Both the position numbers and the translations under genes were made by a program. A DNA stretch of 64,000 bases from Paramoeba atlantica (lineage: Eukaryota > Protista > Discosea). Positions 2,740-64,000 of the stretch are shown here, in pieces. The stretch spans positions 1 to 64,000 of the forward strand of contig CDRNVI010000157.1 of the NCBI GenBank assembly GCA_977017575.1, in the 5' to 3' direction. Under the pieces are notes generated by a model that had not been told where the DNA came from, did no database searches, and was given only the letters and a program-made list of their open reading frames with translations. How positions within the stretch are numbered: the stretch's first letter is position 1; each line of letters starts with the position of its first letter.

Positions 2740-3567
2740 TCACTCAAGAGATATTTTCGTGCCCATCCATATTTTCGCAAGATTGGCATGCACCGCTACA
2801 GGAAGTTTTTCCACTCTTACGCTTCCGCTCAATAACTTGTTTCCATGCAAATAGATAAGTTTCATCCGATGTGGGAGGCTATGCAGGTCTACGCTTCCTT
2901 CAAAGTTATTGTGATCTAAGAAAAACCACTGGAGATTCGGAGGAAGCTCAGTCAATGTCAAGGGTCCTGAAAAGTAGTTGTGTCCTAGCTTCAACTCGAT
3001 TAGGTCCGGAGGCAAATTTATAAGACTCAGGCTGCCTGATAGATAATTGTGGGAAAAATTGACTACCCCTATTCTTCGAGGGAGGGATGTCAAGTCCAAA
3101 GAGCCACTTAGAGCATTATCGTCGAGCCTTAAGCAGTGAAGGCAACTTCCTGGGGAAAAACTCTCTAAATTCACAGTTCCTGATATGCCATTACCGCTTG
3201 CGCAGAACCTCATAGCGGTTGCAGGAATATGTTTGAGGTCCACTGAGCCTTCTAGATCTTCATAGGACCAAAGTATATTTTCAACGTCTCCACTTTCATC
3301 GCAGTGAATTCCACGCCACGCACACGCGGGTGTCTCCGAGGTCCATCGTTTTGGTTTCCTCTTTAGTCCGCGTACCATTTTTTCCAAAGCATATTCTTGA
3401 GGCAATGTGGCACCGCTGACTTTACCCCTCCGCGTGGCGCTTGCCATGGGTGTTGGATGAGCGTTCGGAAGAGATGATTCCTCCCGAGATAATTCCTTCG
3501 GGCTACTTATTTTGTGGCGTTGCGACGGCCCCGTTTCCGTATCTGACAAGCGTACAGAGAGGATCAT
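2740..3567 (-). CDS. LRR protein (WxGVxC N-cap plus ~6 LRRs), no signal peptide or TM
   Basis: ORF track 2740..3699; likely ATG at 3567 (MILSVRLSD). Contains KVSGATLPQEY, CAWRGIHC and LxxLxLxxNxLSG repeats. Pyrimidine-rich sequence lies upstream. Confidence 0.9.
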   Translation of the reverse strand: MILSVRLSDTETGPSQRHKISSPKELSREESSLPNAHPTPMASATRRGKVSGATLPQEYALEKMVRGLKRKPKRWTSETPACAWRGIHCDESGDVENILWSYEDLEGSVDLKHIPATAMRFCASGNGISGTVNLESFSPGSCLHCLRLDDNALSGSLDLTSLPRRIGVVNFSHNYLSGSLSLINLPPDLIELKLGHNYFSGPLTLTELPPNLQWFFLDHNNFEGSVDLHSLPHRMKLIYLHGNKLLSGSVRVEKLPVAVHANLAKIWMGTKISLE

Positions 3568-3837
3568 TGAGAAAATACCAAAGTAGTGTCCAGTAGAAGA
3601 AAGGAGTGTAAACAACAGGGAAAAATGGAGTGTAAACAATGGGGAAACAAACATAGCTTGGGCCAAAAAAAAATTGGTATTGAAAGTGCTCTTGCACACA
3701 TGGATCCTGTCAACATCTAAAATTTACAGGTGATTTGCTTTTACTGGTTTTTTGTTAGAACCCCAGGCACGGGGTTCACTCTATTTACCTTTTCACTCAG
3801 ATCTTTATGCACCGACTTTAGTACGCAAATTGTTTTC

Positions 3838-4740
3838 TCAAGGAAAAGGATCCAAACTCACACCTGGGGGCGTGGCTCCGTCATATTCATCTTTGGGACC
3901 CCAATCACTGAAGCTGTTGCCGGTGAGGTACAAGTTACAACGAAAATCCGACACGAAACGTCGTTTCACAAGTTGATGCTGGCGCAAGGGGCTAAGATCA
4001 AGGTACCCAGAAAAACGATTGTGTGACAAGTTCATGAAGAAAATAGATGAAGGAATATCCGCTGGGAACACCAAAGTTCCACTCAGTTTATTCCGCGCGA
4101 GGTTAAATACCCCCATGTTCCGCGGCAGTGCTCGGAGATCGATAGGACCTGTAAAGTCATTCGATGATAGATCAAGGGTTCGGAGCCCTCGCGGGAGTGC
4201 CGAAAGTATTATACTGCCCGTAAGTTTATTTTCACGCAATCCTAACACTTTCAAGCACTCTGCCGACATAGTCGATAGATCAAGATTTCCAGAGAAGCGA
4301 TTTCTTTCGAGTTTCAACGTCTCCAACTTTGGCGGAAGATTCTGAAGTGATAAAGTACCCGACATTGAGGTGCCGGACAGGCAAAAATGTTGTATACGCG
4401 CCGGCAAGTAGTCAAGATTTATTTCACCCCACAGATTGGGATAACTCCTCAGCCCCACGCTGGTAAGTGTTGAAGGTAGAGCACCCCAACTAAGATTTCC
4501 TTCCAGTTGAGGAATTCCTTTGCTACTGGTGATGCTTACTATATTCTGATCTGCATTGCAGGAAACGCCTTTCCATGTGCATGGAGAAACTTTCTTCATA
4601 CCCCCGAACAATCTTCTTTTTTCTGTAATCCATGTACGATCTCGCACTGTTGCTCCCCTTAGAAATTCTTCGAGCACACGTTCCTGTGGTAATAACTCCC
4701 GACGTACTCTTCCACAGCGAAGGTCCGATCCGTCGTCCAT
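3838..4740 (-). CDS. LRR protein (300 aa)
   Basis: GRVRRELLPQE, CTWKGVSC cap, then ~7 repeats such as LPPKLETLKLERNRFSG. Confidence 0.9.
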   Translation of the reverse strand: MDDGSDLRCGRVRRELLPQERVLEEFLRGATVRDRTWITEKRRLFGGMKKVSPCTWKGVSCNADQNIVSITSSKGIPQLEGNLSWGALPSTLTSVGLRSYPNLWGEINLDYLPARIQHFCLSGTSMSGTLSLQNLPPKLETLKLERNRFSGNLDLSTMSAECLKVLGLRENKLTGSIILSALPRGLRTLDLSSNDFTGPIDLRALPRNMGVFNLARNKLSGTLVFPADIPSSIFFMNLSHNRFSGYLDLSPLRQHQLVKRRFVSDFRCNLYLTGNSFSDWGPKDEYDGATPPGVSLDPFP

Positions 4741-5072
4741 AACTCACTAATTCAAAACAGAACAAAGTATTGAATTCCTACTTTGATCTTTTCTAGTTAG
4801 AACAAAAACGAATACAAAGACAAGCGCAGAGGACTCTACAACGAATAGACTCTAAAGAAAGTTCAACTGTACTGCGAAGAAATACTCTTGTGCTAGTGAT
4901 AACATGCATGGGATGATGCTGAAAGCACTAGTGATATACCGTGACCCCCACTTTAATGTAGATACAATTTCGTGTTTTGCCTCTATTAAAGGGGGCGATG
5001 AAATGAGAATCCGAATCACGAAAAAAAATCTGCGCCGCTTCGCGGGGCCTCTTTTTCTAATTCAATAAAATA

Positions 5073-5948
5073 CTGTACCCCCCCTAGTTATCTGTCTTTT
5101 CGGCCCTTCGAATATTATTTTACGTCGACTACCGCCCCTAGTTATCTGTCGCCTTTCTAAACAAAATGAAAAACGTATAAAATGAGAAGCAAAAATTCAC
5201 TTTTTTTCTGTTCTGCTTTTAGGGTAATGGTTTTGCGTGGCGTTCTACGGTAAAAATTAGAAAACAGGAGTCGGAGCTCGTTATCCCCTCCATCATCTAA
5301 GATTAGATATTTATGAGTTTCAATGGGTACGCGTCTCAAATTTTCAATGATAATATAAAGAAATTTAAAGATCGTCTATGTGAACATTTGAAAACGGACT
5401 AGTGCCAATGGACTAGTCATTGGACCAATACCAATGTGTTGTCCGCAGCAAGGTCCTGGTGTAAACAGTTGTGCAATTCACATGGTAAATAATATGTATT
5501 ATGTATGTAAATAATATGTATGTATAATATGTATATCCGTGATATAGACATTATTTCCTGTCGTGACCTTTGTGAAAATTGGAGTCCGATAGCTCACGAT
5601 GTTTTACTTTAACCCATGGATGTAACATAATTAATGTTTTAACTCTATAAAATGTGCGTGAATTATTCTCTGGGCTTCTTTTAACCTGTAGACGCATATC
5701 TTCAGCTTGTAGTACCCCATTGGGGTAGAAAGGAATCTTCCTAGGCAATAAAGATACCGTTTCTGTAACATTTCATTCCTTCGCTTTTTTTGGCGACGGA
5801 CCCCCCTAGTTATGTGTCGCACTTTGACCCCCCTAGTTATCTGTCGCACCCTTACCACCCCCCTAGTTATCTGTCGCACCCTTACCACCCCCCTAGTTAT
5901 CTGTCACCTTTTCCCGAAAAGTAGCGACAGATAACTAGGGGGGTACAG
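5073..5948. mobile_element. MITE (876 bp), pogo-type TIR, TA TSD
   Basis: TA|CTGTACCCCCCCTAGTTATCTGTC ... GACAGATAACTAGGGGGGTACAG|TA. Internal direct copies of CCCCCTAGTTATCTGTC occur at 5135 and 5800-5905. Confidence 0.9.
5750..5768 (+). other. Spliced-leader-like motif AAAGATACCGTTTCTGTAA
   Basis: Identical 19-mer at 16818-16836 and (reverse complement) 52180-52198. Resembles the kinetoplastid SL core GATACAGTTTCTGTAC. Confidence 0.5.
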
Positions 5949-19424: not shown

Positions 19425-20930
19425 GGAAACCTGTAAGCAGTGCATAACTGCTGTAATGGTTTTTATGACAATAATTATTAATTGCGGTGGTTGTATAACT
19501 ACCGCTCTACCCTCGATTATTGAAAAAAAAGTGACCAAAAAACGGTGAAAATATAAAGAGTCCTGCTACTCGTAGTTTTTGCAGAAACTACATGCAGCAC
19601 GAACGTCGGTAGTGGGATGCAATTTGCGAAGCCCACGGGGGTGGTATGGCGAGGGCCAGCGTGAGCGGGCCTGAGTCGTACGCGACGTCGTTAGTGGGAA
19701 GCAATTTGCGAAGCCTCGTTTAACAACAACCACCGCTTTTTAACGAAGCAGCTAGCACGCCGATATTTTAAGCTTATGGTGCTGACTATTACTGTATGGG
19801 AAAGAACAAATATCGCGCGTTGGAATAATACAAGTCAAATTTAAGTGTGGGGAAAATGTGTAGCTCTAATGGTCCTAAAAAGTATAAGGCAAAGCATGAA
19901 AAAAAACCAGAAAATATCCGTATACTAGAGTAGATGTTATTGCGCGCCCTGACAAAATAGTAACTGTACAACATTCTCAGAAACAAAATTCTCCGAACAC
20001 TATATTATTCACACTAACACTATAGTATATAAATTAGGCCGTCTAATTCTATAATATTTAACTCCCAATTTGAATTATATCCCAGCGCAACATCAACTAT
20101 TTATTTGTCAATTATTTTTTGTATGCTGAGGTTCGTCGTGTTTCCCATTACAGGTACTAACTCACCATCGTCCACGTATTCCACAAGCGGCCCGGCTCGG
20201 TCTGTGCCGTGTCATCTCACCATTGCTTACCGTAATCTTTGTTCGCGCTACAGTATAATACAGATTCTTTAACTCGTCTCTGATTTTTAGGAAGCCTTCA
20301 AGTTCTGCATTAAAAGCTAAGCTCATGTCACGCAAGTTTTCGTGCACGAAATCGAATTCAATATGACCAGACAATTTATTGTCACACATATTAAGATAGA
20401 CTAGAAAGGGTGGCAGGTGACGAAAATCTGGAGTGCCCGTGAACTGGTTGTTGGATATGTTAATGTCTTTCAATTTCGGAGGCAACTGATCAAAGGGAAA
20501 CTCACCCGATAGAGAATTGAACGTTAGCCGTAAAATTTCCAATTCGTACGGCAAATATTTTACATTGAACTGGCCTTGTAGTTTCTCGCTAGAGCCCATC
20601 ATGTGACCCCAGGTTATCCAAATCACGTCGCCCTTGTCGTTACATCTGACTCGATCCCATCTACATCCCGGGGTATCGGTGGACCACGAGCGTGGAGGGT
20701 TTTCTACGAGTCTCATCAAATCGTACTCCACAGGTAACGACACGGCACTGACTTTGGATGGACGAGATGTTCCAGTCACATTAGAACTGCTCGTTGAAAG
20801 CGTCGTGTCGGAAGAATTCGTTTCACTGTGGGCTTCCTTCCTTAACGGTTCCGTTACATCCGCCGAAAGCATAGAACAAAGCATAGCAATAATCAATGTT
20901 TTAAAAAGACTAACTTTGAAATAGTGTAAA
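19425..20930. repeat. ~1.5-kb segmental duplication (partner ~29325-30830) containing a short hairpin-ended element and an LRR gene
   Basis: Base-by-base near identity of the non-coding sequence and the LRR ORF. The 230-bp sub-block 19768-19997 also recurs at ~18985-19220. Confidence 0.9.
20162..20884 (-). CDS. LRR protein, paralogue of 30061-30777
   Basis: SKVSAVSLPVEY, CRWDRVRC cap and ~4 LRRs. Likely ATG at 20884 (MLCSML). Confidence 0.88.
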   Translation of the reverse strand: MLCSMLSADVTEPLRKEAHSETNSSDTTLSTSSSNVTGTSRPSKVSAVSLPVEYDLMRLVENPPRSWSTDTPGCRWDRVRCNDKGDVIWITWGHMMGSSEKLQGQFNVKYLPYELEILRLTFNSLSGEFPFDQLPPKLKDINISNNQFTGTPDFRHLPPFLVYLNMCDNKLSGHIEFDFVHENLRDMSLAFNAELEGFLKIRDELKNLYYTVARTKITVSNGEMTRHRPSRAACGIRGRW

Positions 20931-20976
20931 CAAGTTCCTGATCAAGCACGAGCCTAGCATTTTTACCAAATTCATA

Positions 20977-23607: not shown

Positions 23608-23843
23608 CACTTTTTCGCAAATTTCTAGAAAAACTTGCAATTGACGTTGCCACCTACCGTTTTGAGCCACCTACCATTTTACAAAAAATGGCATTTATCC
23701 GGGAAACGATATATCCTTCACAGGAGGGTTGTGTAAAAGCTCTCGAATGCGCTATTAATTTCTAAAATTTACCAAACATTTGCAAATTTGAGACCCCCCC
23801 AGCATTAGCTGATCCCCCCTGTACATGTATTTACACATGTATA

Positions 23844-24593: not shown

Positions 24594-25238
24594 TCAAGGG
24601 AAGGGAGATTCTGCAGGATCCCACACTTCAACACAAGAAGGGATCTCTCCCATAGGAAACGTTACTTTTGTGTTATAGAGCGTGAGTGTGTGTAAGCTGT
24701 GCGGAAGTTTCGAAAAATCAGGAACACCTTCAATAGGATTGTCATTCAAACGAATCGAACCCATGGTTCCTGGAAGACCAGCAAAATTTACACTGCCTTG
24801 TAGGTTGTTCTCGCTGAGGTCTAACACGCGCAGCGTAGGAGGAAGGTCATTCACTTCAATGGACCCGCTGATGCCCAGATCAATAAGCAGTAACTCTAAT
24901 AGAGCTCGTGGTAATAACGAAAAGCTAACGTATGGAATCACGCCTTTTTTGTACTTGTAGAGTCCGTCGAGGTCTCTATTGTAGGCGGAGCTCAAATTCA
25001 AGAGTAATAATGAATTCGGCAAACTAGACCACTGGAAGGCGCCAGAAAGTCCGAATCCTTTCCATTCTAGCCCTACTACATTATGCGTTTCATCACAAGT
25101 CACACCCTCCCAGTCACATGCAGGCGTGTGCGTGGACCATGATTTTCTAGGGTTCGGAATGTCCTTAATGAAAAGAGCAAGAGAGTACTCCTGTGGTAAA
25201 CCTGCACTACGAACTCGATGCGCCACACTTTCTGACAT
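24594..25238 (-). CDS. Short LRR protein
   Basis: RVRSAGLPQEY, CDWEGVTC cap and ~4 LRRs. Likely ATG at 25238. Confidence 0.88.
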   Translation of the reverse strand: MSESVAHRVRSAGLPQEYSLALFIKDIPNPRKSWSTHTPACDWEGVTCDETHNVVGLEWKGFGLSGAFQWSSLPNSLLLLNLSSAYNRDLDGLYKYKKGVIPYVSFSLLPRALLELLLIDLGISGSIEVNDLPPTLRVLDLSENNLQGSVNFAGLPGTMGSIRLNDNPIEGVPDFSKLPHSLHTLTLYNTKVTFPMGEIPSCVEVWDPAESPFP

Positions 25239-25611: not shown

Positions 25612-26436
25612 CTACGGTGACACAAGTGCAATTTTCGTGTTTCTAATGTTAAGATTAAACCCAACCTTGTCGGGAAGCAAACGCTTTTCGATCTCGCCAT
25701 GCAGCATTACGTTATTTGACAAATCGAGCTGGTGCAATGTACTAGGAAGGCTTCTTACGTCAATTTTGCCGGAAAACCTATTTGTGTATAGTCGAAGGTG
25801 GCATAAGTTTGGGAGATCACGCAAACACACTTTTCCTGATAGCTGATTACGGTCGAGAGAGAGATATTGCAAGTCTGAAGGTAATTCGGTTAAGCAAATT
25901 TCACCGGTAAATCGGTTAGCAGAGAGGTCCAGATCGCGCATATTTGGAGGGAGAGCTGTTAAGTCCAATGGTCCACTAAGCTCATTGTCCCGAAGACCTA
26001 AAGAAACCAACTTGCAAGACAAAACGTTCAGTGGCACTTCGCCTGAAACTTTGGTAATAAAAACATGGAACCTGTGTACGGTCTTTGGGAGATAACCAAA
26101 ATTCAACGAGCCTGTGAGTTGTTTGTATGACTTATTTGAAAATCCGTTCCAATTTATAACCGTAGTCTCATTCGCTTTATTACAAATCACGCCGTCCCAC
26201 TCGCAAGCCGGGGTTGGTGTATTCCACGAGGGATGCGGATTTCCAACATTGCGAACAAGTTGTGCAAGTTCGTATTCTTGTGGGAGATTTGCCATGCTCA
26301 CTCTTCCTCCACGTGCTCCGCGTATGGGCGTTACTTGTGCAATTTCTTGACGTACAGCAGAGTTGACTAAAGGCATAATTTTTCGACGCTTCACGGGGGA
26401 CTCCAAAGTGTCGCGTAAACGTGCAGTCAGCAGCAT
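25612..26436 (-). CDS. LRR protein, subfamily shared with 39449 and 58186
   Basis: GRVSMANLPQEYEL, CEWDGVIC cap and ~6 LRRs. Likely ATG at 26436 (MLLTARLRD). Confidence 0.9.
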   Translation of the reverse strand: MLLTARLRDTLESPVKRRKIMPLVNSAVRQEIAQVTPIRGARGGRVSMANLPQEYELAQLVRNVGNPHPSWNTPTPACEWDGVICNKANETTVINWNGFSNKSYKQLTGSLNFGYLPKTVHRFHVFITKVSGEVPLNVLSCKLVSLGLRDNELSGPLDLTALPPNMRDLDLSANRFTGEICLTELPSDLQYLSLDRNQLSGKVCLRDLPNLCHLRLYTNRFSGKIDVRSLPSTLHQLDLSNNVMLHGEIEKRLLPDKVGFNLNIRNTKIALVSP

Positions 26437-29324: not shown

Positions 29325-30830
29325 GGAAAACTGTAAGCAGTGCATAACTGCTGTAATGGTTTTTATGACAATAATTATTAATTGCGGTGGTTGTATAACT
29401 ACCGCTCTACCCTCGATTATTGAAAAAAAAGTGAACAAAAACGGTGAAAATATAAAGAGTCCTGCTACTCGTAGTTTTTGCAGAAACTACATGCAGCACG
29501 AACGTCGGTAGTGGGATGCAATTTGCGAAGCCCAAGGGGGTGGTATGGCGAGGGCCAGCGTGAGCGGGCCTGAGTCATACGCGACGTCGTTAGTGGGAAG
29601 CAATTTGCGAAGCCCCGTTTAACAACAACCACCGCTTTTTAACGAAGCAGCTAGCACGCCGATATTTTAAGCTTATGGTGCTGACTATTATTGTATGGGA
29701 AAGAACAAAATATCGCGCGTTGAAATAATACAAGTCAAATTTAAGTGTGGGGAAAAAGTGTAGCTCTAATGGTCCTAAAAAGTATGAGGCAAAGCATGAA
29801 AAAAAACCAGAAAATATCCGTATGTTAGAGTAGATGTTATTGCGCGCCCTGACAAAATAGTAACTGTACAACATTCTCAGAAACAAAATTCTCCGAACAC
29901 TATATTATTCACACTAACACTATAGTATATAAATTAGACCGTCTAATTCTATAATATTTAACTCCCAATTTGAATTATATCCCAGCGCAGCATCAACTAT
30001 TTATTTGTCAATTATTTTTTGTATGCTGAGGTTCGTCGTGTCTATTTCCCATTACAGGTATTAACTCACCATCGTCCACGTATTCCTCCTCGGTCTGTAG
30101 CGTGTCACCTTACCATTGCTTACCGTAATCTTTGTGTGCGCTACAGTATAATACAGATTTTTTAACTCGTCTCTGATTTTTAGGAAGCCTTCAAGTTCTG
30201 CATTAAAAGCTAAGCTCATGTTACGCAAGTTTTCGTGCACGAAATCGAATTCAATATGACCAGACAATTTATTGTCACACATATTAAGATAGACTAGAAA
30301 GGGTGGCAAGTGACGAAAATCTGGAGTGCCCGTGAACTTGTTGTTGGATATGGTAATGTCTTTCAATTTCGGAGGCAACTGATAGAAGGGAAACTCACCC
30401 GATAGAGAATTGGAGGCTAGTTGTAAAGTTTCCAATTCGCACGGCAAATAGTTTACATTGAACTGACCTTGTAGTTTCTCGCTAGGGCCCATCATGTGAC
30501 TCCAGATTATCCAAATCACGTCGCCCTTGTCGTTACATCTGACTCGATCCCATCTACATCCCGGGGTATCGGTGGACCATGACGGTGGAGGGTTTTCTAC
30601 GAGTCTCATCAAATCGTACTCCACGGGTAACGACACGGCACTGACTTTGGATGGACGAGATGTTCCAGTCACATTAGAACTGCTCGTTGAAGGCGTCGTC
30701 TCGGAAGAATTCGTTTCACTGTGGGCTTCCTTCCTTAACGGTTCCGTTACATCCGCCGAAGGCATAGAGCAAAGCATAGCAATAATCAATGTTTTAGAAA
30801 GACTAGCCTTGAAGTAATGTAAAGAAGTAC
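29325..30830. repeat. Partner of the 19425-20930 duplication
   Basis: Near-identical sequence. Confidence 0.9.
30061..30777 (-). CDS. LRR protein, paralogue of 20162-20884
   Basis: Same architecture. Likely ATG at 30777. Confidence 0.88.
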   Translation of the reverse strand: MLCSMPSADVTEPLRKEAHSETNSSETTPSTSSSNVTGTSRPSKVSAVSLPVEYDLMRLVENPPPSWSTDTPGCRWDRVRCNDKGDVIWIIWSHMMGPSEKLQGQFNVNYLPCELETLQLASNSLSGEFPFYQLPPKLKDITISNNKFTGTPDFRHLPPFLVYLNMCDNKLSGHIEFDFVHENLRNMSLAFNAELEGFLKIRDELKNLYYTVAHTKITVSNGKVTRYRPRRNTWTMVS

Positions 30831-32200: not shown

Positions 32201-33015
32201 TCAAATAAGCATGATATCCGGGGTCTGCGGTGGATCATACGAACTGAAACGGTTTGCCATCAACCGAAAAATCACAAAGCCATGCGGTAAATTCCCCCAT
32301 CGCACAACTCCGGAAAGTTCATTGCAGCTGAGATCCAAGCTGTACATAGTTTTCGGGAGCTTCGTTAAATCGATGGATCCGGAGAACGCGTTGCCACGAA
32401 GGAGCAAAGACTCCAGCGTGGGTGGGAGCGACGTAAGCACCAAAGGGCCCGTAAAGCCGCTCTCATTGGCCCAAACCATTTGAAGGGTACGTGGAAGTCG
32501 AGTGAGGTCGAATTCCCCGGCTAATAAATTGTTTGAAATGGAGAGCAGTTCGAGTTTTTGGGATAACGCCTCTAGTTCTATAGGACCTGAAAAATGGTTC
32601 TCGTCGAGCTTAAGTGTGGAGACACTCTCAGGAAGTGGATTCAGTCCTGTGGGAAGAGTACCAGAGAATTTACAGTGTTGCAACTCAAGACAAGTCAGAG
32701 CACGTGGCAGTGAGCCCCATGGAATCGTTCCGATCAGCTCCGTACCGTAAATAATACAAGTTTTGATCGTGTCGGGGAGAAGCTCCCAGCGCAGTTCCCC
32801 TTTATCCGTTGGGTAGCGAACTCAATATATCTTGGTCTTCCGTCTTCGTTTAATTTTACTCCTTCCCACTCGGTTAATGGGGTGGATTCCTTCCACGTAG
32901 AATGCGGATTCGTCACATGCTTTAAGAAACAAAGAAGTTGCACATGAGGGGGCAACAAGGTGTTCCTTACCTTAGCCCCGCGTGAGACGTCCGCGCAAAC
33001 AGTTCTCCGGAGCAT
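32201..33015 (-). pseudogene. LRR gene with a single frameshift near 32797-32800 (could be a sequencing error in a G4 run)
   Basis: MLRRTVCAD..GAKV..LLPP..TEWEGV..KG|ELRWELLPDTIKT..LPRALTCLELQHCKFSG.. is continuous after one 1-nt correction. Confidence 0.8.
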
Positions 33016-33175
33016 AAAAACGATAATCTGTAAACAACGTTCAGATTTTCTTAGATTTTACAGTGCACCAGTAGAGTAGTTAGGAGCTATTTCATGAAAT
33101 ATAGATTTCCTATAAACAAATGAGAGGTTGCGGTGGCGAGATTTCACTAGGTTTCACCTGCAGCCCCTCAAATTA

Positions 33176-37231: not shown

Positions 37232-37960
37232 TTATTGATCTACGACTACAAGTTTGGTATTCGAAGAACATCTCAATAATTGAATACTTTTTTTTAATCG
37301 CGGGTGGAGCTTGCTTGCGACTATTGTACCTTCCAGAAGCGGATTTTTATCTAAAGTAAGGGTATCTAGCTTCTCCGGAAGGATTAATAAATCTATCATT
37401 CCTTCGAATTCGTTTCCAGACAAGTATAAAGCTTCCAGAGTGTCCGGGAGTGCCCCGAAATCTAATTTTCCAGTCAAGAAATTATCACTAACGTCAAGAT
37501 GTACCAGATCGACGGGCAACTGTGTAAGGCATATATCACCAGACAATTCGTTTGTTTCCATCCATGCGCCGGTAGAAAGCTTCGGGAGTCTTGTCAGATC
37601 CGGATTGCCTGTAAATTTGTTTCCTCCCAGAAAGAAATGCCTTAACTTTACTAATGGGAAAAGGTCACATGGGACGTTTTCCCCTGATATGCTGTTGTAT
37701 TCAATATCGAACGTCTCAACGGACATTAAAATACATGCAAACTTCATGGATCCACTCAACTTTTGACGGCTCCACCTTATTTCAGTAACTTTCTCCTCTG
37801 AATTACACTTGATGCCTTTCCATTTGCAAGCAGAAATGTCAGAATTCCAGCTCTCATGACGAGTGTGCAAACCACTAATGAGCCGCTCAAGATCCATTTC
37901 TTGTGGTAAATTCAATGCACCAACCTTCGACGGGAGCGTGGATGGCGCTTGGGAATCCAT
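37232..37960 (-). CDS. LRR protein, paralogue of 59502-60215
   Basis: SKVGALNLPQEM, CKWKGIKC cap and ~6 LRRs. Likely ATG at 37960 (MDSQ). Confidence 0.9.
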   Translation of the reverse strand: MDSQAPSTLPSKVGALNLPQEMDLERLISGLHTRHESWNSDISACKWKGIKCNSEEKVTEIRWSRQKLSGSMKFACILMSVETFDIEYNSISGENVPCDLFPLVKLRHFFLGGNKFTGNPDLTRLPKLSTGAWMETNELSGDICLTQLPVDLVHLDVSDNFLTGKLDFGALPDTLEALYLSGNEFEGMIDLLILPEKLDTLTLDKNPLLEGTIVASKLHPRLKKSIQLLRCSSNTKLVVVDQ

Positions 37961-38545: not shown

Positions 38546-39106
38546 TTACTTCTGAATCCAATCAGCCGGAATGCCCCACCAAACAGTTTTAGGTTGAATG
38601 CCTTCCGGAATTGATCCTTGGAGATTTGTATTCCCCGTTATATCGAATCCAGTAATTTTTGAATCCTTCAGAAAAGAAAGATCAACAAAGCCAGTGAACT
38701 GATTTCGAGAGATGTTCAAAATTAGCATGGTAGGCGGCAGGTCCTCAAGGTGAAGCTCACCTGTAAACCTGTTGCCTTGGAGCCACATTCTTTCAAGTAC
38801 AGGAGGAAGCAACGCGAAACTTACGCACCCGCTCAATTGGTTGCCGCTCAGTTCGAGGTATGTTACAGAACGTGGTATCGAACCCCAGTGCAATGTACCG
38901 GACAGCCCTCGACCACTCCAAGCAATGCGGCTAACTTCACCCTGCTCACTACACGTCACACCAATCCACTCACATGCTGGTGTAGTCGTATTCCATGACT
39001 CATGCAGATGTTGAACATCACTAATAAACTTTGTGAGTTCGTATTCCGGAGGGAGAAACATGCCCCTGACCTTACCTACACGTGTTGTGCTCTTAGGAAT
39101 ATTCAT
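38546..39106 (-). CDS. Short LRR protein (186 aa)
   Basis: GKVRGMFLPPEY, CEWIGVTC cap and ~4 LRRs. Confidence 0.88.
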   Translation of the reverse strand: MNIPKSTTRVGKVRGMFLPPEYELTKFISDVQHLHESWNTTTPACEWIGVTCSEQGEVSRIAWSGRGLSGTLHWGSIPRSVTYLELSGNQLSGCVSFALLPPVLERMWLQGNRFTGELHLEDLPPTMLILNISRNQFTGFVDLSFLKDSKITGFDITGNTNLQGSIPEGIQPKTVWWGIPADWIQK

Positions 39107-44205: not shown

Positions 44206-44212
44206 TATTATA

Positions 44213-50333: not shown

Positions 50334-52050
50334 TACATTACCTCTATGTGATTTCTTTTGGTCTAAAAAAAACTGTTAGAAAAAAAACGTTTGCAAACTT
50401 TTTTGCATACATACTGTACGTACTATGACCTCGGAGAGTCAATTAAATCAAGTAAACAGCATTGCGGACAAGGAAATGGATGCGAAACGCAAACGATACG
50501 ACTGGGGTTAGCTCAACATGTTAGCTGTCACGCGTTAGCTGAACGTGTTAGCTAAGAGTTGTTAGCTCAACTCTACGCGTAAGGAGCCTGATAAACGCTC
50601 AATCACCATTGAATCACCATTGAACCACCTTCCTTCGTCGGTGACCAAAGAAGACATAACAAAATATTACTCTCTGTATGGGACTATTGATTTTTTAACA
50701 ATCGCATCGAAGAAAAGCGCGCATCCAGCGTTTACTGTAAGGAAATAAAGAACAGAAACTAGAATTTCGCATGAAGTGTGTGAGAATACGTTTTGAAGTG
50801 CAAGTTAGCTTTGAATTTTTCCCAGTATAGTTTACAGATAATACCTGAGCCCACGGCCACAAAGGTTGTCTTCCGATCTCTTAGGAACAGAGAAATAGGT
50901 CCTCACCTATTTGGAGAACCATATTTATAGCGCTCTGCCGATTAAAATCACCAATGTCCCGCCAGATATGGTGCTTCACTTATTGTCTCTTATACCGGAG
51001 GGAACATGCACCCTTAAAACGCATAAACCTCGGACCCTTGTATACATGCAAAAGGTATTATAATGTAATGCATATTTTAGCCTGATGACGCATCATGTAA
51101 AATATTTACGTGGATAATAAAATACTTCTGCCCTTCTTTCACCATGTTTCAAACACCTAGAATTTCTAGGTAGGTTAATACGTTTCTTAGAAGAAAAAGA
51201 AACGTATGACTTCGGAAGACCGCAAACTGATCGGAGTTCTCCACAATCAATAAAATTTTCCCAAGCATTGTTGTGTTGCTGTTGTCTTGTTGCAGTTATC
51301 CAAGCCAACATGGAATTGCCTCAAAGTTGAAAGCAAATGCCTAAAACAATCGTGCATTGCGGGCCAGGAGGGTCGCTCCCAAACCATTGTTTCAGACAGA
51401 GGTCGTTTTCAAATCGATTCCCACTCTCTATATTTTAAACTATTCAATGTAGCTCTATAATGTTTTTCTTTTGTTCATAGCAACGTATTGGGCTATTTGG
51501 AATGTGTTTTTCACCGTTTCAGCATTCGTACGGTAGCGCTGCTACCATGGTAGCAATAATGTGTCCCTCCGCCGGTTTACTCCACATTGCTCAATACATA
51601 TTTTTACTTGCACTTATTACTAAGGAAAATAACATAGCAACGCTACACGTTTGCGAACGTTACATGTCTATGTATATCGGTATCCTCAATCAGGAGTCCC
51701 AAACGCAGTTTTTGAGAAAGAACATGGCTTTCCACCACTCCGCATAGCTTGAAATTCTTGGACAAATTAAGGTCTTCTAGTGTATTTGGGAGGCTTCTTA
51801 GAGTTAGAGTAGTTTGAAAAATTTACTACAATGTATCAATATTTCAAATTCGTCAAATAATTCAAATAACATAGTAAAGAATCGTAATTATAATGTTGAA
51901 CAAAACTTTTAAATCGAGGTGGTGCGTCAGGGAAAAGAGAAGGTGGTTTTAACGCAGAGCGCCAGGGTGTTATGGCGTTAGTTCATAGGGATTTGCTGGC
52001 GTTGCAGAACGGTATGTTTCATATTTCGTAAAATTGTGTCTTTGATATAA

Positions 52051-58185: not shown

Positions 58186-59022
58186 CTATGTTGTTAACAG
58201 TGTAATGTTGGTGTTCTCTATCACAAACTCATCGCGCAGAATTTTGGGAAGAAGACTCTCTTTTATCTTTCCGGATAGGTTTACGTTGTGTGACAGATCA
58301 ATATGTTCTAGTGTATGGGGAAGGCGTCTCACATTAAGCTCCCCAGAAAAATTGTTGCCGTCAAGTCGGACAAATGATAATTTAGAAAGTTCGCTGAAAC
58401 AAAGCTCTCCGAATAACTGGTTCCCATCGAGACAAACACTTGTCAATGTTAACGGCAATTTCTTTAAGCATATTTCACCAGTAAATCGGTTACGAGAAAG
58501 CGTTAGAGTTTCCAATTTAGGAGGGAGAGCTGTCAAGTCCAATGTTCCGCTCAACTGATTCTCACGTAGACTCAACGTACGCAAATGGGACGGGAAAGTG
58601 TTAAGAGGCACTTTTCCTGAAAGCTTGTTCTCGCACACGTAAAGGGTGTATAGCGTTTTGGGTAAATAACCAAAATTCAACGAACCTGTTAGCTTTACAC
58701 GTATCATAGAGAGTGATAATTGTACATTTATCATAGACCAACTAATAGACGTTACCTCATTCGCTTCGTTACAACACACGCCATACCACTTACAAGCAGG
58801 GAGAGATACATTCCACGAGGGATGCCGATATTCAAGATTGTGTACAAGTTCTGCAAGTTCATATTCTTGTGGGAGATTCTTCATGCTTACTTTTCCTAGA
58901 CGTACTCCGTGCACGGACTTTGGTATTTCTTGAACTAAAGCAGAATCAGAAGTATGATTCGTCTTGCGACGCTTCGAGAGCGGTTCCAACGTGTCACGCA
59001 AGAATACTGCAGTAAACATCAT
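58186..59022 (-). CDS. LRR protein, subfamily of 25612 and 39449
   Basis: GKVSMKNLPQEYEL, CKWYGVCC cap and ~6 LRRs. Likely ATG at 59022. Confidence 0.9.
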   Translation of the reverse strand: MMFTAVFLRDTLEPLSKRRKTNHTSDSALVQEIPKSVHGVRLGKVSMKNLPQEYELAELVHNLEYRHPSWNVSLPACKWYGVCCNEANEVTSISWSMINVQLSLSMIRVKLTGSLNFGYLPKTLYTLYVCENKLSGKVPLNTFPSHLRTLSLRENQLSGTLDLTALPPKLETLTLSRNRFTGEICLKKLPLTLTSVCLDGNQLFGELCFSELSKLSFVRLDGNNFSGELNVRRLPHTLEHIDLSHNVNLSGKIKESLLPKILRDEFVIENTNITLLTT

Positions 59023-59501
59023 TGAAAACGTAAATTGAATAAATAACAAAAGAAAATGATCGAACGCTAATTCATCAAAACAGTTATACTGGACCCCCTT
59101 AGTTATCTGACATTACTTTTCGTGAAAAGATGACAAACATACTCATAAATTATATTGAGATATATAAATTATATTGAGTGAGTTAGGTGGTTACTTCTAT
59201 TCAGTAAGTTAAGTACGTTTTAAGTTCAACCTATGAATTTCAAGAACATTTATAGAACGATAAGCAGCAAATCCAATGACTGCAGCGAATATTATTTATT
59301 ACAAAACATTTTCAGAAACAAACAGCTTCAAAGTAATCTTAACTCCATGCTTCATGCATGTATTTTCTCATTGCTTCATACATGTACTTTCTCTACCATG
59401 ATCAAAAAAAGGAAACTGAAAATCAAAAATGAGAATGAAAATTTAAATTTTAATTTTCTGGATTTTCATTTTTGACCTGGGAAGTAGTGCTTCCTAAATC
59501 A

Positions 59502-60215
59502 TTATCTTAATATCACGAGCTTGGTATTCGATACATCAATGCGTTTCTTTAACCGCGGATGGAGCTCACTCGCAACTACTGTACCTTCCAGAAGCGCATT
59601 GTTATCTAATGCAAGGGCATCTAGATTCTCTGGAAGGAGCGATAGGTCCACCATTCCTTCGAATTCGTTTCCAGACAAGTACAAGGATTCAAGAGTGCGC
59701 GGGAGTGCTCCCAAATCTAATTTTCCTGTTAAGAAATTATCACTAACGTCAAGATGTACCAGATCGACGGGCAATTGTGTAAGGCATATATCACCAGACA
59801 ATTCGTTTCTTTCCATCCATACGGCATCCGAGAGCTTCGGCAGTCTGGTAAGATCCGGATTGCCTGTAAATTTGTTCACACCTAGATAGAAAGCAGACAA
59901 ATTTACTAATGGGAAAAGGTCACATGGGAGGAGTTCCCCAGATATACTGTTGCGTTCAATATTGAGTTCCACAATGGACATTGGAAGGTATGCAAACTTC
60001 ATGGATCCACTCAATTTTTGACGGTTCCACCTTATTTCAGTAACTTTCTCCTCTGAATTGCACTTGATGCCTTTCCATTTGCAAGCGGAAATGTCTGAAC
60101 TCCAGCTCTCATGACGTGAGTGCAAACCACTAATGAGCCGCTCAAGATCCATTTCTTGCGGTACATTTACTGCACGAACTTTCGATGGGCGCGTGGATGG
60201 CGCTTGAGAATCCAT
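59502..60215 (-). CDS. LRR protein, paralogue of 37232-37960
   Basis: Same N-cap and repeat count. Confidence 0.9.
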   Translation of the reverse strand: MDSQAPSTRPSKVRAVNVPQEMDLERLISGLHSRHESWSSDISACKWKGIKCNSEEKVTEIRWNRQKLSGSMKFAYLPMSIVELNIERNSISGELLPCDLFPLVNLSAFYLGVNKFTGNPDLTRLPKLSDAVWMERNELSGDICLTQLPVDLVHLDVSDNFLTGKLDLGALPRTLESLYLSGNEFEGMVDLSLLPENLDALALDNNALLEGTVVASELHPRLKKRIDVSNTKLVILR

Positions 60216-61418
60216 TGCACGTAAGTTAGATAAAATGCTAAGGGTAGTTTTTGGCAGTATAAACCAACTTCGAACGAAATTTGTTCTCTTTCGTTTTACA
60301 ACGGAATAGATTCTTTATTATTTTTGTGATTCTAGGAATAGCAAATTATGGAGTAAAGGTGAGGTACGTCTATTGTTGGCAATCATATATTGTTGACATT
60401 TGATCAATCTTGATTTTTTTTACCCAAAGCCATGTATGATGAATAAACTCCTGGAATCTGCTAAGGTCAAAATTGAAGAATGATTTCTCAAGTTATGGTG
60501 TCTCACGCAGCAAACTGCATATTTCAGGAAAACTTGGTATAACACTATCCGTAGCACCACTATCCGGGGTGTGACCGGGGAAAAAAGTGTACCTTTGTGC
60601 TCGAAAGCCCGAAAGATAAAATCGCTTTAAATTAAGTGTAATAGAAAAAAATCACACTCGAAGTTGGTACTAAGTGATCTACAGTACATGTATCTACAGT
60701 ACATGTATTCGCTCGTGAGTTACATGTAACTCACATGTATCCGCTTGTGACCGTTTTTTTCGACTTTTTCGAGTTTTTTCGAGTGAGTCATAAAAGTAGT
60801 CTAAGTTGTTTTGATTGCCAACAATAGATGATTTTATTGCCGTTCCATCTATTGTTGATTAAGGGGGATATTGTATCATCTATTGTTGGCAATCGGCTAT
60901 TGTTGGCCAAAAAAAGTTGCCAACAATAGACGAGCCCCCCCTTTATGTACTCCCCCTCTCATTAATTTTTATAAATGGATTTCGAGTCATAAAAATTCGT
61001 TTTATGCGCTCTCATTAATTTTTATAAATCAAACAAATTCAACTATTCTTTTTAAATTTTATTTCGAAGCAAACAAAAATCACTCTTTTGTTCTACTGAA
61101 AATGAATTACTTCATGGGCGTAGATGGTCGTCCTTCACAGCGGTTTCTTTCAGAGAAGAGAAAGTGGTTGATTTCTGTGGTGGACAATAACGGTAGGAAA
61201 ATTACGATAAATATATCGTTTTCGTGCATGTATGGGCGTTCTCATCGCAACATGCTTGGAGTACCAAGGATGTTTCAAATAAGCCATGAAAAGTATCATG
61301 ATAATATCGTTTTTGTAAAGAAGCAACTTTCTCTAAAAGTCGGATGCAAACTCGATACCGAGAAGTAAGGTCAGAACCTCCTCGTAGTCTTCCCTGGAAT
61401 TACCATCTCACCCCATCA

Positions 61419-62445: not shown

Positions 62446-63352
62446 ATTGCGGTGGTTGTAAAACTACCGCTCTACACTCGATTATTGAAAAAAAAGTGAA
62501 CAAAAACAGTGAAAATATAAAGGGGAACACAGTAATATAATAGAAGAAAAAAATATAAAAGGGGGCTCCGGTGGTCCAAAACTGAAAAAAAAAATTGAAA
62601 AAAATGGGGGGTCCATGGGGGGGTCCAGGGGGGGGGTCCAGGGGGGGGGTCCAGGGGGGGGGGGCATGGTCGAGCAAATTTTTTCGAAAAAATTAGTTTT
62701 CAAAAAAAAACCGCAGAAAGGGTAGCCGGGGTCTTGGCGCGCATTTTCCACCCCCCTACCCGGGGGTGACCCCCCCGCGTATCCGCAGGACGGGTCCGCC
62801 AAGTTCGGATTTTTTCGGAAAAAAATTTTTGAAAAAAATTTCAACTTGGCGAAAAAAATGACAAAAAAAATATTTTTCCAAAATCGTTTCCCCTATTGTA
62901 TTTTGATAGTTTGGGACCTACACTAGCTTTCTACGCAGTTGTTTTCGCAAGGTATCACTTCTTCGAACCGTGGTGCGCCCCTCGAAATGACCCATTTTTG
63001 ACTAAAAAAGGTGAAAAAGTATTTTTCGGACCTAAAGGGGCATTTTTGTGTCGAAAGAATGGTATGGTTGGAGTCGCATTCTCTACCCAATACGTTCGGT
63101 AGGCTTTCATTCATGCCTGCGAGTGATTTCCCACGCGCAAATGTCGGATTTAGTGCTCTGAGAGCAAAAATATGCGAAAATGACCCCATTTGTACCCGAA
63201 ATTCGGCTATTTTTGGCTATAATCTTTCCGTTTTCCATGCTAAATTTTCTTTTTTAGGCTCTTCGTTAAACGCGGCGGTAGTTTTCAACGCGAAGCGCGC
63301 AGCATGAGTGACTTCTAAGTTGAAAGCAACCACCGCGTTTAACGAAGAGCCT
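62446..63352. mobile_element. Complete copy of the hairpin-ended non-autonomous element (~0.9 kb)
   Basis: Left end ATTGCGGTGGTTGTAAAACTACCGC is self-complementary. The right end has a ~33-bp inverted repeat (63256-63289 / 63319-63352). Central G-rich VNTR, no ORF. Confidence 0.85.
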
Positions 63353-63466
63353 AAAAAAGAAAATTTTAATAATCATCTAAAAAAATATTATTGTGCATGG
63401 TGAAAACTCTAAATTATCGAAAACTCTAAATTGTCAGCCTGTTTTCACGTAGGCAATATTTTCTAA

Positions 63467-63810
63467 AATTTTCTTGAGGCGAAAGCGACTTTTTCGCCAA
63501 AAGCAATCTATTTAAGCAAAGATAAAGAATAAATAACAAAAGTAAATAAATAAGGTTCTAAGATGTTTTTAAAGACCATTAACAATGATAATGATATTGA
63601 GACTCAGAAAATTATTATCATTCTTGAAGTTTATGGCAATTTTCTTGAGACGAAAGCGACTTTTTCGCCAAAAGCAATCTATTTTTAAACAAAGATAAAG
63701 AATAAATGACAAAGGTAAATAAATAAAGTTCTAAGATGTTTTTAAAGACCATTAACAATGATAATGATAATGATAATCAGAAAATTATTATCGTTCTCGA
63801 AGTTTATGGC
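63467..63810. repeat. Tandem duplication, 2 x ~172 bp, AT-rich
   Basis: 63467-63637 is near-identical to 63638-63810. Confidence 0.9.
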
Positions 63811-63906
63811 ATTGAAGTTTATGACATAGATCTCTTGAACGGAGGCTTGTATCTGCCGGGAAATGTTGTGTAAGATCATCAACAATCGTTTACAATAGTA
63901 GCAATA

Positions 63907-64000
63907 TTAATAACCCCACCCAAGGTTCATCAAGTTTTCTATATCACATCGACTTAACGGGCCATTGCTAACAATGATTTGAGTTCCGTTAACGTCATAA
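63907..64000 (-). CDS. Probable 3' end of another LRR gene entering from the right edge
   Basis: YDVNGTQIIVSNGPLSR..GWGY* resembles YTVARTKITVSNG at the C-terminus of the 20162/30061 proteins. Confidence 0.4.
   Translation of the reverse strand, partial: YDVNGTQIIVSNGPLSRCDIENLMNLGWGY

Follow-up and report, generated by a model that had tools for sequence, protein, structure and literature searches.

A same-strand array of small leucine-rich repeat genes, most likely from a Perkinsela-type kinetoplastid, whose copies diverge fastest at the concave face

We analysed a window of 64,000 nt (the whole stretch of DNA under study) and found 11 intact small leucine-rich repeat (LRR) genes, each intronless, along with one frameshifted copy and two relics. 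Searching the whole window by tblastn and HMM gave 13 LRR regions, made up of 12 near-full ORFs and the relics at 51673-51819 and 61686-62212, and all 13 lie on the minus strand, with none on the plus strand. With the frameshifted copy counted, this agrees with the 12 near-full-length genes plus fragments listed earlier from the letters of the DNA (the sequence-only reading). The features are:

2740..3567, minus: LRR gene g2740, 275 aa from the conserved Met, 7 repeat units (ORF, Pfam LRRNT_2, repeat register, start choice)
3838..4740, minus: LRR gene g3838, 300 aa, 6-7 units, longer C-terminal tail (ORF, Pfam, register)
20162..20884, minus: LRR gene g20162, 240 aa, S/T-rich leader, 4 units (ORF, Pfam, register)
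24594..25238, minus: LRR gene g24594, 214 aa (ORF, Pfam, register)
25612..26436, minus: LRR gene g25612, 274 aa, NLS-like RDTLESPVKRRK in leader (ORF, Pfam, register, start choice)
30061..30777, minus: LRR gene g30061, 238 aa (ORF, duplication comparison)
32201..33057, minus: frameshifted LRR gene, overlapping ORFs 32201-32821 and 32734-33057, in-frame cap absent (tblastn/HMM, register)
37232..37960, minus: LRR gene g37232, 242 aa, paralogue of g59502 (ORF, Pfam, pair comparison)
38546..39106, minus: LRR gene g38546, 186 aa, 4 units (ORF, Pfam, transcript-contig match)
39449..40183, minus: LRR gene g39449, 244 aa from the conserved Met, 7 units (ORF, Pfam, register, start choice)
51673..51819, minus: LRR gene relic, C-terminal 49 codons (tblastn/HMM)
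58186..59022, minus: LRR gene g58186, 278 aa, leader RDTLEPLSKRRK (ORF, Pfam, register, start choice)
59502..60215, minus: LRR gene g59502, 237 aa, AF2 model with pLDDT 90.9 (ORF, Pfam, AF2, structure search)
59194..60256, minus: extent of the mature g59502 mRNA, 41-nt 5' UTR, CDS and 308-nt 3' UTR (transcript contig L007)
61686..62212, minus: degenerate relic of an LRR gene, 149 aa aligning with g39449 at 35% identity (tblastn/HMM)

A 1.5-kb segmental duplication holds g20162 in one copy (19425-20935) and g30061 in the other (29325-30828), with a divergent tract in g30061 across the cap and N-terminal repeats. The copy at 32201-33057 is a probable pseudogene, as a frameshift splits its ORF. 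The duplication and the frameshifted and relic copies are signs of birth and death, and gene-conversion tracts between paralogues account for part of the patchy divergence.

Apart from the LRR genes, the only recognisable coding content is transposases. The transposon-dense compartment proposed from sequence thus holds for this window, but elsewhere members sit singly among genes for eIF5B, RFC and eIF3a. The proposed co-orientation is likewise seen throughout the window but is nothing special, as 43 of 43 family ORFs in seven loci share one orientation with the rest of their locus, housekeeping genes included. The loci used for comparison come from an alternative, indel-rich assembly, which shows 64 gaps per 15.6 kb when aligned with the window. 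In a kinetoplastid host this is ordinary polycistronic organisation and needs no special explanation; the same-strand array is as expected for a polycistronic unit, and would be transcribed as one.

Spliced leader (SL) sequence was found at the 5' end of two family mRNAs. One is the g59502 mRNA, for which contig L007 shows 99.34% identity over 1063 nt and has the SL's last 7 nt at its start. The other, L008, starts with the same 14 nt as a kinetoplastid-type SL relic (...CAGTTTCTGTACCTTGTTG, followed by GT) inside the window, and its first AUG thereafter is the conserved Met. Over 38605-38985, g38546 shows a 100% match to contigs of a run only guessed to be RNA. Transcript support therefore exists for at least two of the 11 intact genes, clear for g59502 and weaker for g38546. 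The paralogous repertoire described earlier consists of real genes, and they are not the untranscribed set that was named as speaking against it.

The SL relic and the SL on family mRNA also bear out the earlier placement in a protist. At ≥90% identity, family proteins fall into clusters together with MMETSP transcripts (P0061/P0090, P0011/P0057/P0058); further clusters of the family are expressly labelled Paramoeba aestuarina MMETSP0161, and the closest Atlas clusters bear the labels Euglenozoa and Discosea. A housekeeping protein put to the same purpose matched nothing but itself. As a kinetoplastid-type SL here goes together with ≥90% clusters with P. aestuarina-type transcripts, a Perkinsela-like endosymbiont is suggested as the bearer; most likely the genes belong to a Perkinsela-type kinetoplastid living in a Paramoeba, probably P. 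aestuarina.

Each protein is predicted to have a short, disordered leader and, after it, an LRR solenoid with a plant-type cap. In the aligned family, R.[GS]KV....LPxE[YM] is followed by the LRRNT_2 cap W....C.W.G[VI].C (core CxWxG[VI]xC), by 4-8 repeats of strictly 23 residues and, at the C-terminus, by the strand NTKIxL. The alignment agrees with the plan of leader, KV..LPxE, WxGVxC cap and LRRs given earlier, with the repeat count now at 4-8. The unit reads L1xxL4xL6xxN9xF11[ST]12G13x[LVI]D16L17xxL20P21xx (79 units), and in the AF2 model of g59502 the concave strands are unit positions 3-5 and the second strand positions 10-14. We considered KV..LPxE as a separate signal and rejected this, as it lies at helix 20-27 of the model, where the LRRNT_2 helix begins. 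The closest solved structures are the plant LRR-receptor ectodomains PSKR1, SRF6 and SERK1 (TM up to 0.78-0.80), with E down to 1e-53 in profile searches against such ectodomains. The fold search also matched A0A0L1KPV3 and A0A0L1KP48, presumably Perkinsela proteins, going by the accession series.

Pfam gave LRRNT_2 and LRR_1/4/8 for the window proteins and no other domain, and Kyte-Doolittle hydropathy from the conserved Met gave no signal-peptide-like or TM-like stretch in them, as the sequence-only reading had stated for signal peptide, TM and effector domain. Among 63 small representatives of the family (50% clusters), hydropathy marks four as signal-peptide-like and one as TM-like. The conserved leader is M-hydrophobic-[SA]D..EP(P).KRRK, with the nuclear-localisation-like KRRK in a subset of the family. 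KRRK and the lack of a classical secretion signal (hydropathy) are pointers on location. The two-cysteine plant-type cap is normally extracellular, an odd fit with a cytosolic protein.

The window genes match a published family, of which the sequence-only reading was unaware. Perkinsela sp. CCAP 1560/4 has at least 462 "leucine-rich proteins", many expressed, whose significance was called unclear (Tanifuji et al. 2017, Sci Rep 7:11688, Supplementary Note 1.4; PMC5601477); the family was thus noted in 2017 and left unexplained. It includes clusters of near-identical copies beside very divergent members, with RNA-seq support (PMC5601477). Both sets comprise small LRR-only genes, by the hundreds, in a kinetoplastid endosymbiont of Paramoeba, a probable one in the case of the window; the sequences in the paper have the 23-residue unit LP..L..L.L..N.F.G..DL as well, and decayed SL genes and strand polarity are shared. 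Unlike the published genome, the window has DNA transposons, and its SL 3' end, CCTTGTTG against CTTAATTG in the published CCAP 1560/4 SL primer, points to a different species. The architecture, structure, leader motif and selection analysis given here go beyond the 2017 account (PMC5601477).

Concave-face codons evolve fastest between copies. The identical loop runs and variable beta-strands quoted earlier for g37232 and g59502 (81% aa identity, dS 0.38) are present exactly as given, and differing codons number 16/35 at concave, 6/49 at convex-exposed and 11/77 at scaffold positions (concave versus convex, Fisher p=0.0009), while synonymous differences are scattered along the gene. Changes fell on both lineages, and some concave sites carry 3-4 different residues among four subfamily members. 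Pooled over three independent pairs, ω was 0.96 at concave (95% CI 0.60-1.57), 0.20 at convex exposed (0.09-0.34) and 0.11 at scaffold positions (0.05-0.18); over six pairs concave versus convex gave OR 2.07, p=0.0014. Elevated dN/dS at the beta-strand sites, whose absence was to count against the sequence-only reading, is therefore present. Long-term entropy is equal on the two faces (concave 3.53 bits, convex 3.45 bits), hence the difference is not simple structural constraint. However, in no comparison does concave ω confidently exceed 1, and when g59502 or g37232 is set against L010, at similar dS, it comes to 0.48-0.50. Relaxed constraint therefore fits equally well. Of the diversifying repertoire proposed earlier, the concentration of replacements on the concave face stands; strict positive selection is unsupported, and gene conversion contributes.

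In plant R genes, receptor-like proteins (RLPs) and lamprey VLRs, replacements concentrate at the concave xxLxLxx positions, and the genes form clustered arrays whose members duplicate and exchange sequence. The window genes share these traits, but differ in lacking concave ω above 1 with confidence, in having no NB-ARC, TIR or kinase signalling domain (Pfam) and in that somatic assembly has no support in this analysis. Plant LRR receptors and LRR-only proteins (PSKR1 4z61, SERK1, SRF6, MIK2, PGIP) give the best structural and profile matches and share the LRRNT_2 cap with W...CxWxGVxC and the N.[LF][ST]G second strand, PGIP and SERK-size members being similarly small; yet identity is only 20-28%, the unit has 23 residues with an LP signature against a plant consensus of 24, and signal peptide, TM segment and kinase are absent. 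YopM and SspH2/IpaH of bacteria also have a short LP-containing unit, and YopM is LRR-only, but their units have 20-22 residues and they carry a type III secretion signal, SspH2 also an E3 ligase domain; this is generic LRR likeness rather than demonstrated homology. Among microsporidia, Spraguea lophii has an LRR family of 97 ORFs, and that of Trachipleistophora hominis is also expanded (PMC3749934). As here, a reduced intracellular eukaryote has no larger lineage-specific expansion than its LRR family, with many fragments and only some members expressed, and the T. hominis family lacks secretion signals; the sequences are unrelated, and most S. lophii members (37/52) have signal peptides (PMC3749934). 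Leishmania PSA and Bodo saltans bodonin are likewise kinetoplastid LRR multigene families, but carry a signal peptide and GPI anchor or TM domains (PMC4728078, PMC2621209). A B. saltans fosmid holds two adjacent small "LRR kinase-like" genes of 948 and 483 bp with plant receptor kinases as best hits (PMC4728078, PMC2621209), a likeness to the window family by description only.

The array might have arisen by neutral birth and death, that is, by passive duplication in a repeat-rich, recombining region, with unconstrained concave residues drifting and weak selection or recent origin keeping the fold; the repertoire would then show no adaptive diversification. Concave ω indistinguishable from 1, or below it in other pairs, suits this, as do the broken copies (4/15 in the window), transposases as the only companions, and whole-gene ω of 0.8-1.1 in the youngest allelic or duplicate comparisons, untranslated upstream sequence included. 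We still find it unlikely as a full account, as scaffold and convex ω indicate sustained purifying selection on most of the protein, mRNAs are processed with intact ORFs, Perkinsela, Papus and Rhabdomonas all retain the family, and convex positions, equally free in the long term, are conserved in young pairs, which makes the early changes face-specific.

That same face-specific divergence would suit effectors exported by a non-classical route, perhaps via the conserved and truly translated leader, which would bind proteins of the amoeba cytosol, the KRRK-bearing subset acting in the host nucleus, in parallel with bacterial LRR effectors and microsporidian expansions such as that of S. lophii. 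The massive size that the family has reached in so reduced an endosymbiont (462 of 5,252 predicted Perkinsela sp. proteins) and profile similarity to the LRR domains of YopM (E=1.6e-28) and SspH2 (E=3.7e-19) point the same way, although the latter is generic. We regard this reading as rather improbable: hydropathy shows no signal peptide, and relatives in free-living Papus and Rhabdomonas, with the plant-like small LRR genes of free-living B. saltans, indicate that the family predates the endosymbiosis. A mis-modelled N-terminus could also hide surface or secreted adhesins of PSA/bodonin type, as a plant-type LRR with a cysteine cap is usual in extracellular proteins, and g2740 and g25612 would gain hydrophobic N-termini if read from their longer upstream ORFs. 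This is very improbable, and the mRNA 5' ends already largely rule it out (SL directly before the conserved Met in L008, 41-nt 5' UTR in L007); the hydropathy scan of window proteins found no TM segment or GPI-like tail, and bodonin queries gave no Perkinsela hits, the leucine-rich proteins being without similarity to bodonins (Tanifuji et al. 2017, PMC5601477).

We lean slightly towards a large family of LRR-only proteins, small and soluble, that serves a Perkinsela-type kinetoplastid as a binding repertoire. Each protein would be a stand-alone module holding a partner on its concave beta-sheet, and might act in recognition or host interaction as proposed from sequence; local and segmental duplication would create the repertoire, loss through frameshifts and relics would prune it, and short conversion tracts between paralogues would reshuffle it. 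Replacement may be tolerated or favoured mainly at five concave positions per repeat, with purifying selection keeping the fold; neutral relaxation would account equally well for the ω data. We give about an even chance to the proteins acting inside the kinetoplastid, in cytosol or nucleus, and think their export to the amoeba doubtful.

LRR-coding regions in the 64-kb window were searched for by tblastn with twelve ORFs and with an HMM built from them. The search gave 13 regions spanning 2,743-62,212, all of them on the minus strand, while the plus strand had none; counted as loci, the window has 15, and about 50 family ORFs were found over 10 loci. Eleven of the window genes are intact from the conserved Met to the stop, and about 15% of the window is LRR coding sequence. 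Three further regions are split or relic:

32201-33057, minus strand, LRR gene split by a frameshift (tblastn and HMM)
51673-51819, minus strand, LRR relic (tblastn)
61686-62212, minus strand, LRR relic (tblastn)

The common plan was derived from an alignment and from a census of 79 repeat units with their registers. A family protein runs from a leader through R.[GS]KV....LPxE[YM].L..[LF] and W....C.W.G[VI].C to 4-8 repeats, with an NTKIxL strand after the last repeat. The first of these motifs is the first helix of an LRRNT_2 cap, and KV..LPxE, which had been listed as a motif of its own, is rejected as such since it belongs to this helix. Six of 10 family proteins passed the curated cut-off for LRRNT_2, and 52 of the 63 small proteins that represent 50%-identity clusters have the cap Cys motif. 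Over the 79 units the repeat follows a strict 23-residue pattern, L1xxL4xL6xxN9xF11[ST]12G13x[LVI]15D16L17xxL20P21xx. On the LRR ORFs of the window Pfam found only LRRNT_2 and LRR_1/4/6/8, plus faint FNIP matches. Larger relatives elsewhere in the genome are still LRR-only (531 aa with 16 repeats; a 1,355-aa ORF with far more), and across the family the repeat number goes from 4 to more than 40 and the architectures from 166 to 1355 aa, with no signalling or effector domain in Pfam. The 1,355-aa ORF lies on a comparison locus outside the window (L005:14954-19018, plus strand); it has dozens of repeats, and its LRRNT_2 spans residues 334-367.

An AlphaFold2 model of g59502 (59502-60215), with a 28-sequence alignment as input, reached a mean pLDDT of 90.9, with residues 1-14 disordered and a helix at 20-27. 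In every repeat the main beta-strand occupies unit positions 3-5 and a second strand 10-14, as in plant-type LRRs; this strand placement validates the assignment of positions 2, 3, 5, 7 and 8 to the concave face. Among solved structures the closest are ectodomains of plant receptors, namely PSKR1 (4z61, TM 0.78), SRF6 (0.76/0.80) and SERK1/BIR3, and profile matches include MIK2, HSL1, FLS2 and BRI1 (E 1e-49 to 1e-53), YopM (1.6e-28) and SspH2 (3.7e-19). The family shares the N-terminal cap helix and W...CxWxGVxC with the plant-specific type of LRR (PF08263 with PF00560/PF13855), whereas the plant unit is the 24-residue LxxLxxLxLxxNxLSGxIPxxLGx and the unit here has 23 residues and ends L20 P21 x x.

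Two transcript-length family contigs, L007 and L008, come from JGI sample 3300017035. The 5' end of L008 is TCTGTACCTTGTTG, the last 14 nt of a spliced leader (SL), and the first AUG, 34 nt on, is the conserved Met. L007 starts with CTTGTTG, matches window 60256-59194 from its sixth base (99.34% over 1,063 nt), and gives g59502 a 41-nt 5' UTR, the predicted CDS and a 308-nt 3' UTR. The start codons used here are thus supported by mRNA. At the g59502 SL junction (window 60250-60262, L007:1-10) the mRNA joins the SL end CTTGTTG to CCAAAAACT; the genome there reads TATACTG and CCAAAA on the two sides of the junction, and an AG acceptor is absent in the window haplotype. In g38546, 38605-38985 was matched at 100% by contigs of a probable RNA run (2015), with two neighbouring genes uncovered. 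When read runs were compared with the window, transcript-like contigs came only from this run and only at g38546, and no SL-bearing loose end was listed among the contigs on the window. At least two window genes (g59502 and g38546) therefore have transcript support, and MMETSP transcripts exist for family paralogues.

Starting from these Mets, hydropathy found no signal-peptide-like or TM-like segment in the window proteins; among the 63 small cluster representatives four have a signal-peptide-like and one a TM-like segment. Signal peptides gained from upstream Mets are rejected by the mRNA 5' ends of L008 and L007. Together with the LRR-only Pfam result this bears out the sequence-only reading, which had described small LRR proteins without signal peptide, TM or effector domain. 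What the proteins do carry is a conserved leader of Met, 3-12 mostly hydrophobic residues and [SA]D, to which a subset adds ..EP(P).KRRK. The addition resembles a classical monopartite NLS with an acidic-proline motif before it, and is degenerate in other members. The KRRK type is found in g25612 and g58186 in the window; in wider sampling it was seen in 6 of 30 proteins and, in a second set, in 9 of 63. Examples of leaders with the NLS-like motif are:

26400-26436, window, leader with NLS-like motif
58986-59022, window, leader with NLS-like motif
P0011, P0119 and P0194, family proteins, leader with NLS-like motif

The family was compared on these features with other LRR systems. Plant-type LRRs are extracellular and have a signal peptide, unlike the family as judged by hydropathy from the mRNA-supported start. 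For secreted or injected effectors such as YopM, IpaH/SspH and microsporidian LRRs, a recognisable export signal and delivery into the host would be expected; here hydropathy showed no classical signal peptide, and the conserved leader is of another kind. Leishmania PSA and Bodo saltans bodonin combine a signal peptide with a GPI anchor or a multi-pass TM, while hydropathy found no TM-like segment in the window proteins.

The genome that encodes the family carries a relic SL gene unit at 23030-23609, the core of which (~23575-23612, minus strand) reads ...GATACAGTTTCTGTACCTTGTTG followed across the boundary by GTAC. Kinetoplastid and diplonemid spliced leaders share CAGTTTCTGTAC as their conserved core, and Perkinsela is a kinetoplastid endosymbiont carried by Paramoeba. 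A copy of the relic, 97% identical, is present in ENA locus L001 (19850-20348). An Rfam scan of the window gave no family at gathering score, leaving the relic unrecognised, and a full-text literature search with the SL 3' sequence gave no paper. The published Perkinsela SL primer ends in ...CAGTTTCTGTACTTAATTG, related but non-identical to the SL here, which points to a different Perkinsela-like lineage; Perkinsela CCAP 1560/4 itself is rejected as host genome as its SL 3' end differs. SL trans-splicing and strand polarity indicate that the family is encoded in the nuclear genome of a Perkinsela-type kinetoplastid. As for the species, we infer that the lineage is probably the endosymbiont of P. 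aestuarina. Several family clusters are labelled Paramoeba aestuarina MMETSP0161, the closest Atlas clusters carry the labels Euglenozoa and Discosea, and more distant relatives occur in the free-living prokinetoplastid Papus ankaliazontas and the euglenid Rhabdomonas costata. A placement search with a GCD14-like housekeeping protein (locus L004) matched only the query itself, and eIF5B, used as query against the Atlas, gave no informative taxonomic signal. Bodo saltans was rejected as source, with G+C of 50.9% against ~42% here, no named matches and different transposable elements; those reported for B. saltans are all retroelements (ingi, SLACS/CZAR, VIPER) plus TATE, and the Tc1/mariner or pogo-type transposases of the window are not among them.

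The same organism is also in ENA as an alternative, indel-rich assembly, ERZ24900291, whose family proteins share clusters of at least 90% identity with MMETSP transcripts. Its locus L002 corresponds to window 15.6-31.2 kb at 99.2% identity, and over these 15.6 kb the alignment opens 64 gaps; SRP54 at L003:7300-8830 (plus strand) is broken by several frameshifts. The assembly hence resembles a draft or haplotig of this organism with many indels, and a broken gene in it should not be taken for a pseudogene.

A family of this kind has been described before. In the genome of Perkinsela sp. CCAP 1560/4, 462 of 5,252 predicted proteins (~9%) were reported as leucine-rich, with hundreds more found by tBLASTn, and their significance was called unclear (Tanifuji 2017, Supplementary Note 1.4, PMC5601477). 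Some form highly similar clusters and others are barely alike, many have RNA-seq support, and they are not bodonin-related, BLAST with bodonin queries being negative (PMC5601477). Compared by eye, the published sequences (supplementary file 11) show consecutive 23-residue LP-starting units with N.F.G..DL, the same unit as here, and the decayed SL genes and strand polarity of that supplement also match the present genome. In the literature searched we found no other paper on the family; main texts on Perkinsela and LRR held nothing relevant, and searches for LRR with spliced leader or Neobodo gave plant papers only. In public data the family forms 199 50%-identity clusters at E<=1e-30, not all of them from the present organism. 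Existence, copy number and expression of the family were thus published in 2017 for a sister lineage. New here are the structural class and plan of the proteins, the absence of a signal peptide as verified by mRNA, the leader with its NLS-like subset, the concave-face bias and the conversion tracts.

For the concave-face bias, synonymous and non-synonymous changes were counted by the Nei-Gojobori method in three structural classes of repeat codons, with codon bootstraps.

ω by structural class in paralogue pairs (intervals in brackets)
g37232/g59502: dS 0.38; concave 0.84 (CI 0.44-1.60); convex exposed 0.17; scaffold 0.21
Independent pair on L005: dS 0.70; concave 0.96; convex exposed 0.20; scaffold 0.07
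Three independent pairs pooled: concave 0.96 (0.60-1.57); convex exposed 0.20 (0.09-0.34); scaffold 0.11 (0.05-0.18)

In g37232/g59502, the pair singled out by the sequence-only reading, codons differ at 16/35 concave, 6/49 convex and 11/77 scaffold positions (Fisher, concave against convex, p=0.0009), and in the L005 pair at 17/25 concave and 7/35 convex positions. Over six independent pairs the odds ratio of concave against convex is 2.07 (p=0.0014), to be read with the older pairs saturated and the comparison loci taken from an error-prone assembly. Over all repeat units the two faces are equally variable (entropy 3.53 bits concave, 3.45 bits convex), so the slower convex change in young pairs is not a fixed structural constraint. 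When g37232/g59502 was polarised with two outparalogues, concave changes numbered 5 and 7 on the two lineages, and at some concave sites the four sequences compared show three or four different residues. A single decaying copy is rejected as the source of the differences, since the concave changes fall on both lineages.

These data show face-specific acceleration at concave codons. The earlier claim that the genes vary at the predicted binding face holds for the replacement excess of concave over convex positions, but ω is clearly above 1 in no structural class and the excess is weaker in some pairs. Against L010, a third subfamily member at similar dS, ω was 0.48-0.50 for concave and 0.34-0.37 for convex codons; in the youngest pair concave ω was 1.46, a value confounded by a conversion tract. 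Relaxed constraint and episodic positive selection both fit the concave data and are not separated by them. Plant R genes and VLRs share the replacement excess at the concave face over other exposed positions, whereas such repertoires are marked by coupling to a signalling or effector domain or by somatic diversification, and the family is LRR-only.

Sequence exchange adds to this variation. The genes g20162 and g30061 belong to a segmental duplication of 1.5 kb. Its 3' flank shows just 1.8% difference, while from the cap through the first repeats pS is 0.12 and pN 0.05-0.08, both significantly above the flank. Import from a diverged paralogue explains this tract better than point mutation, and its 'hypervariable patch' is downgraded as a case of point-mutation positive selection, given synonymous divergence of 0.12 in the tract against 0.018 in the 3' flank. 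L007 differs from g59502 at seven positions only, all in codons 33-52 and within 60 nt (L007:143-202, window 60119-60060), and six of the seven have the state of g37232. Either the sequenced strain carries a conversion tract here, or the transcript assembly is a chimera, in which case g37232 would be transcribed too. We take these cases as evidence that gene conversion shuffles tracts between family copies.

On the best-supported explanation, a Perkinsela-like endosymbiont has a large family of soluble LRR binding modules that evolves by birth and death and would diversify by duplication, conversion and concave-face replacement. Between young paralogues the fold is kept, and the differences lie mainly at the predicted binding face. 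Pure neutral turnover, in which the copies would merely drift, is a serious rival although we consider it unlikely; relaxed constraint at the concave face would suit it, and the family would even then be a clear example of a reduced genome with a large, fast-turning gene family. The mRNA 5' ends and purifying selection on the fold all but exclude a surface adhesin or an artefact.

Where such modules would act is a separate matter. An internal role in the kinetoplastid, cytosolic or nuclear, has about an even chance. Export to the amoeba is the improbable option. Somewhat more doubtful still is the full proposal of a host-directed repertoire of a eukaryote inside a eukaryote, with the leader M-hydrophobic-[SA]D..EP(P).KRRK as a new export or targeting signal and concave variation tracking host targets; the LRR modules would then leave the naked endosymbiont for the amoeba cytosol, and the KRRK subset would go on to the amoeba nucleus. 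Equally novel would be an LRR-based recognition system internal to the kinetoplastid and directed at its abundant mobile elements or at viruses. Perkinsela/Paramoeba is the only well-studied permanent non-photosynthetic eukaryote-in-eukaryote case, and amoebic gill disease of farmed salmon is caused by a Paramoeba species. The kind of family is itself no surprise, but a second species now adds a plant-type solenoid with a cap and 23-residue units, a start verified by mRNA, a leader, a face bias and conversion. This turns a curious feature of unclear significance into testable questions on location, partners and concave-codon selection, of use for work on the Perkinsela/Paramoeba symbiosis and on repeat-protein repertoires.

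The genomic setting had been read as a co-oriented repertoire in a transposon-dense compartment. Co-orientation is real, as 43 of 43 family ORFs point the same way within their own locus (seven loci, the window and six from ENA), but it is nothing special: ENA-locus members are on the same strand as SRP54, a thioredoxin-domain protein, an RF-1-domain protein, GCD14 and an Rtt106-like protein, which indicates an ordinary polycistronic layout. The closest outparalogue of g59502 stands alone among eIF5B, Hop2-like, RFC and eIF3a genes. This array is at L009:1851-20157 (plus strand), with P0061, which has an MMETSP transcript, as its single family member. The transposon-rich setting is hence a property of the window and not of the family, which is not confined to repeat-rich regions.

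In the window the remaining recognisable ORFs are transposases on both strands, and Pfam gave no match for twenty further ORFs of at least 120 aa. Tc1/mariner (DDE_3) and pogo-like (DDE_1) transposase ORFs are located at:

8360-9481, plus strand
43020-43727, minus strand
40822-41370
49575-50333
54863-56536, plus strand

Of the transposase ORFs at least two are long and look intact; for Perkinsela the published account mentions retroelements only. Another 15% of the window is sequence repeated inside it or at other loci of the same organism. Runs X1, X3 and X4, all of unknown kind, contain the DNA of the window, and in these the contig word depth at 40244-40700 exceeds that of neighbouring genes by a factor of ~100 to over 1,000 (in X1, 51,697 against ~40). 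This very high-copy repeat lies directly upstream of g39449 and holds a (CCCCCCCTGGA)n-like microsatellite and T-rich tracts.
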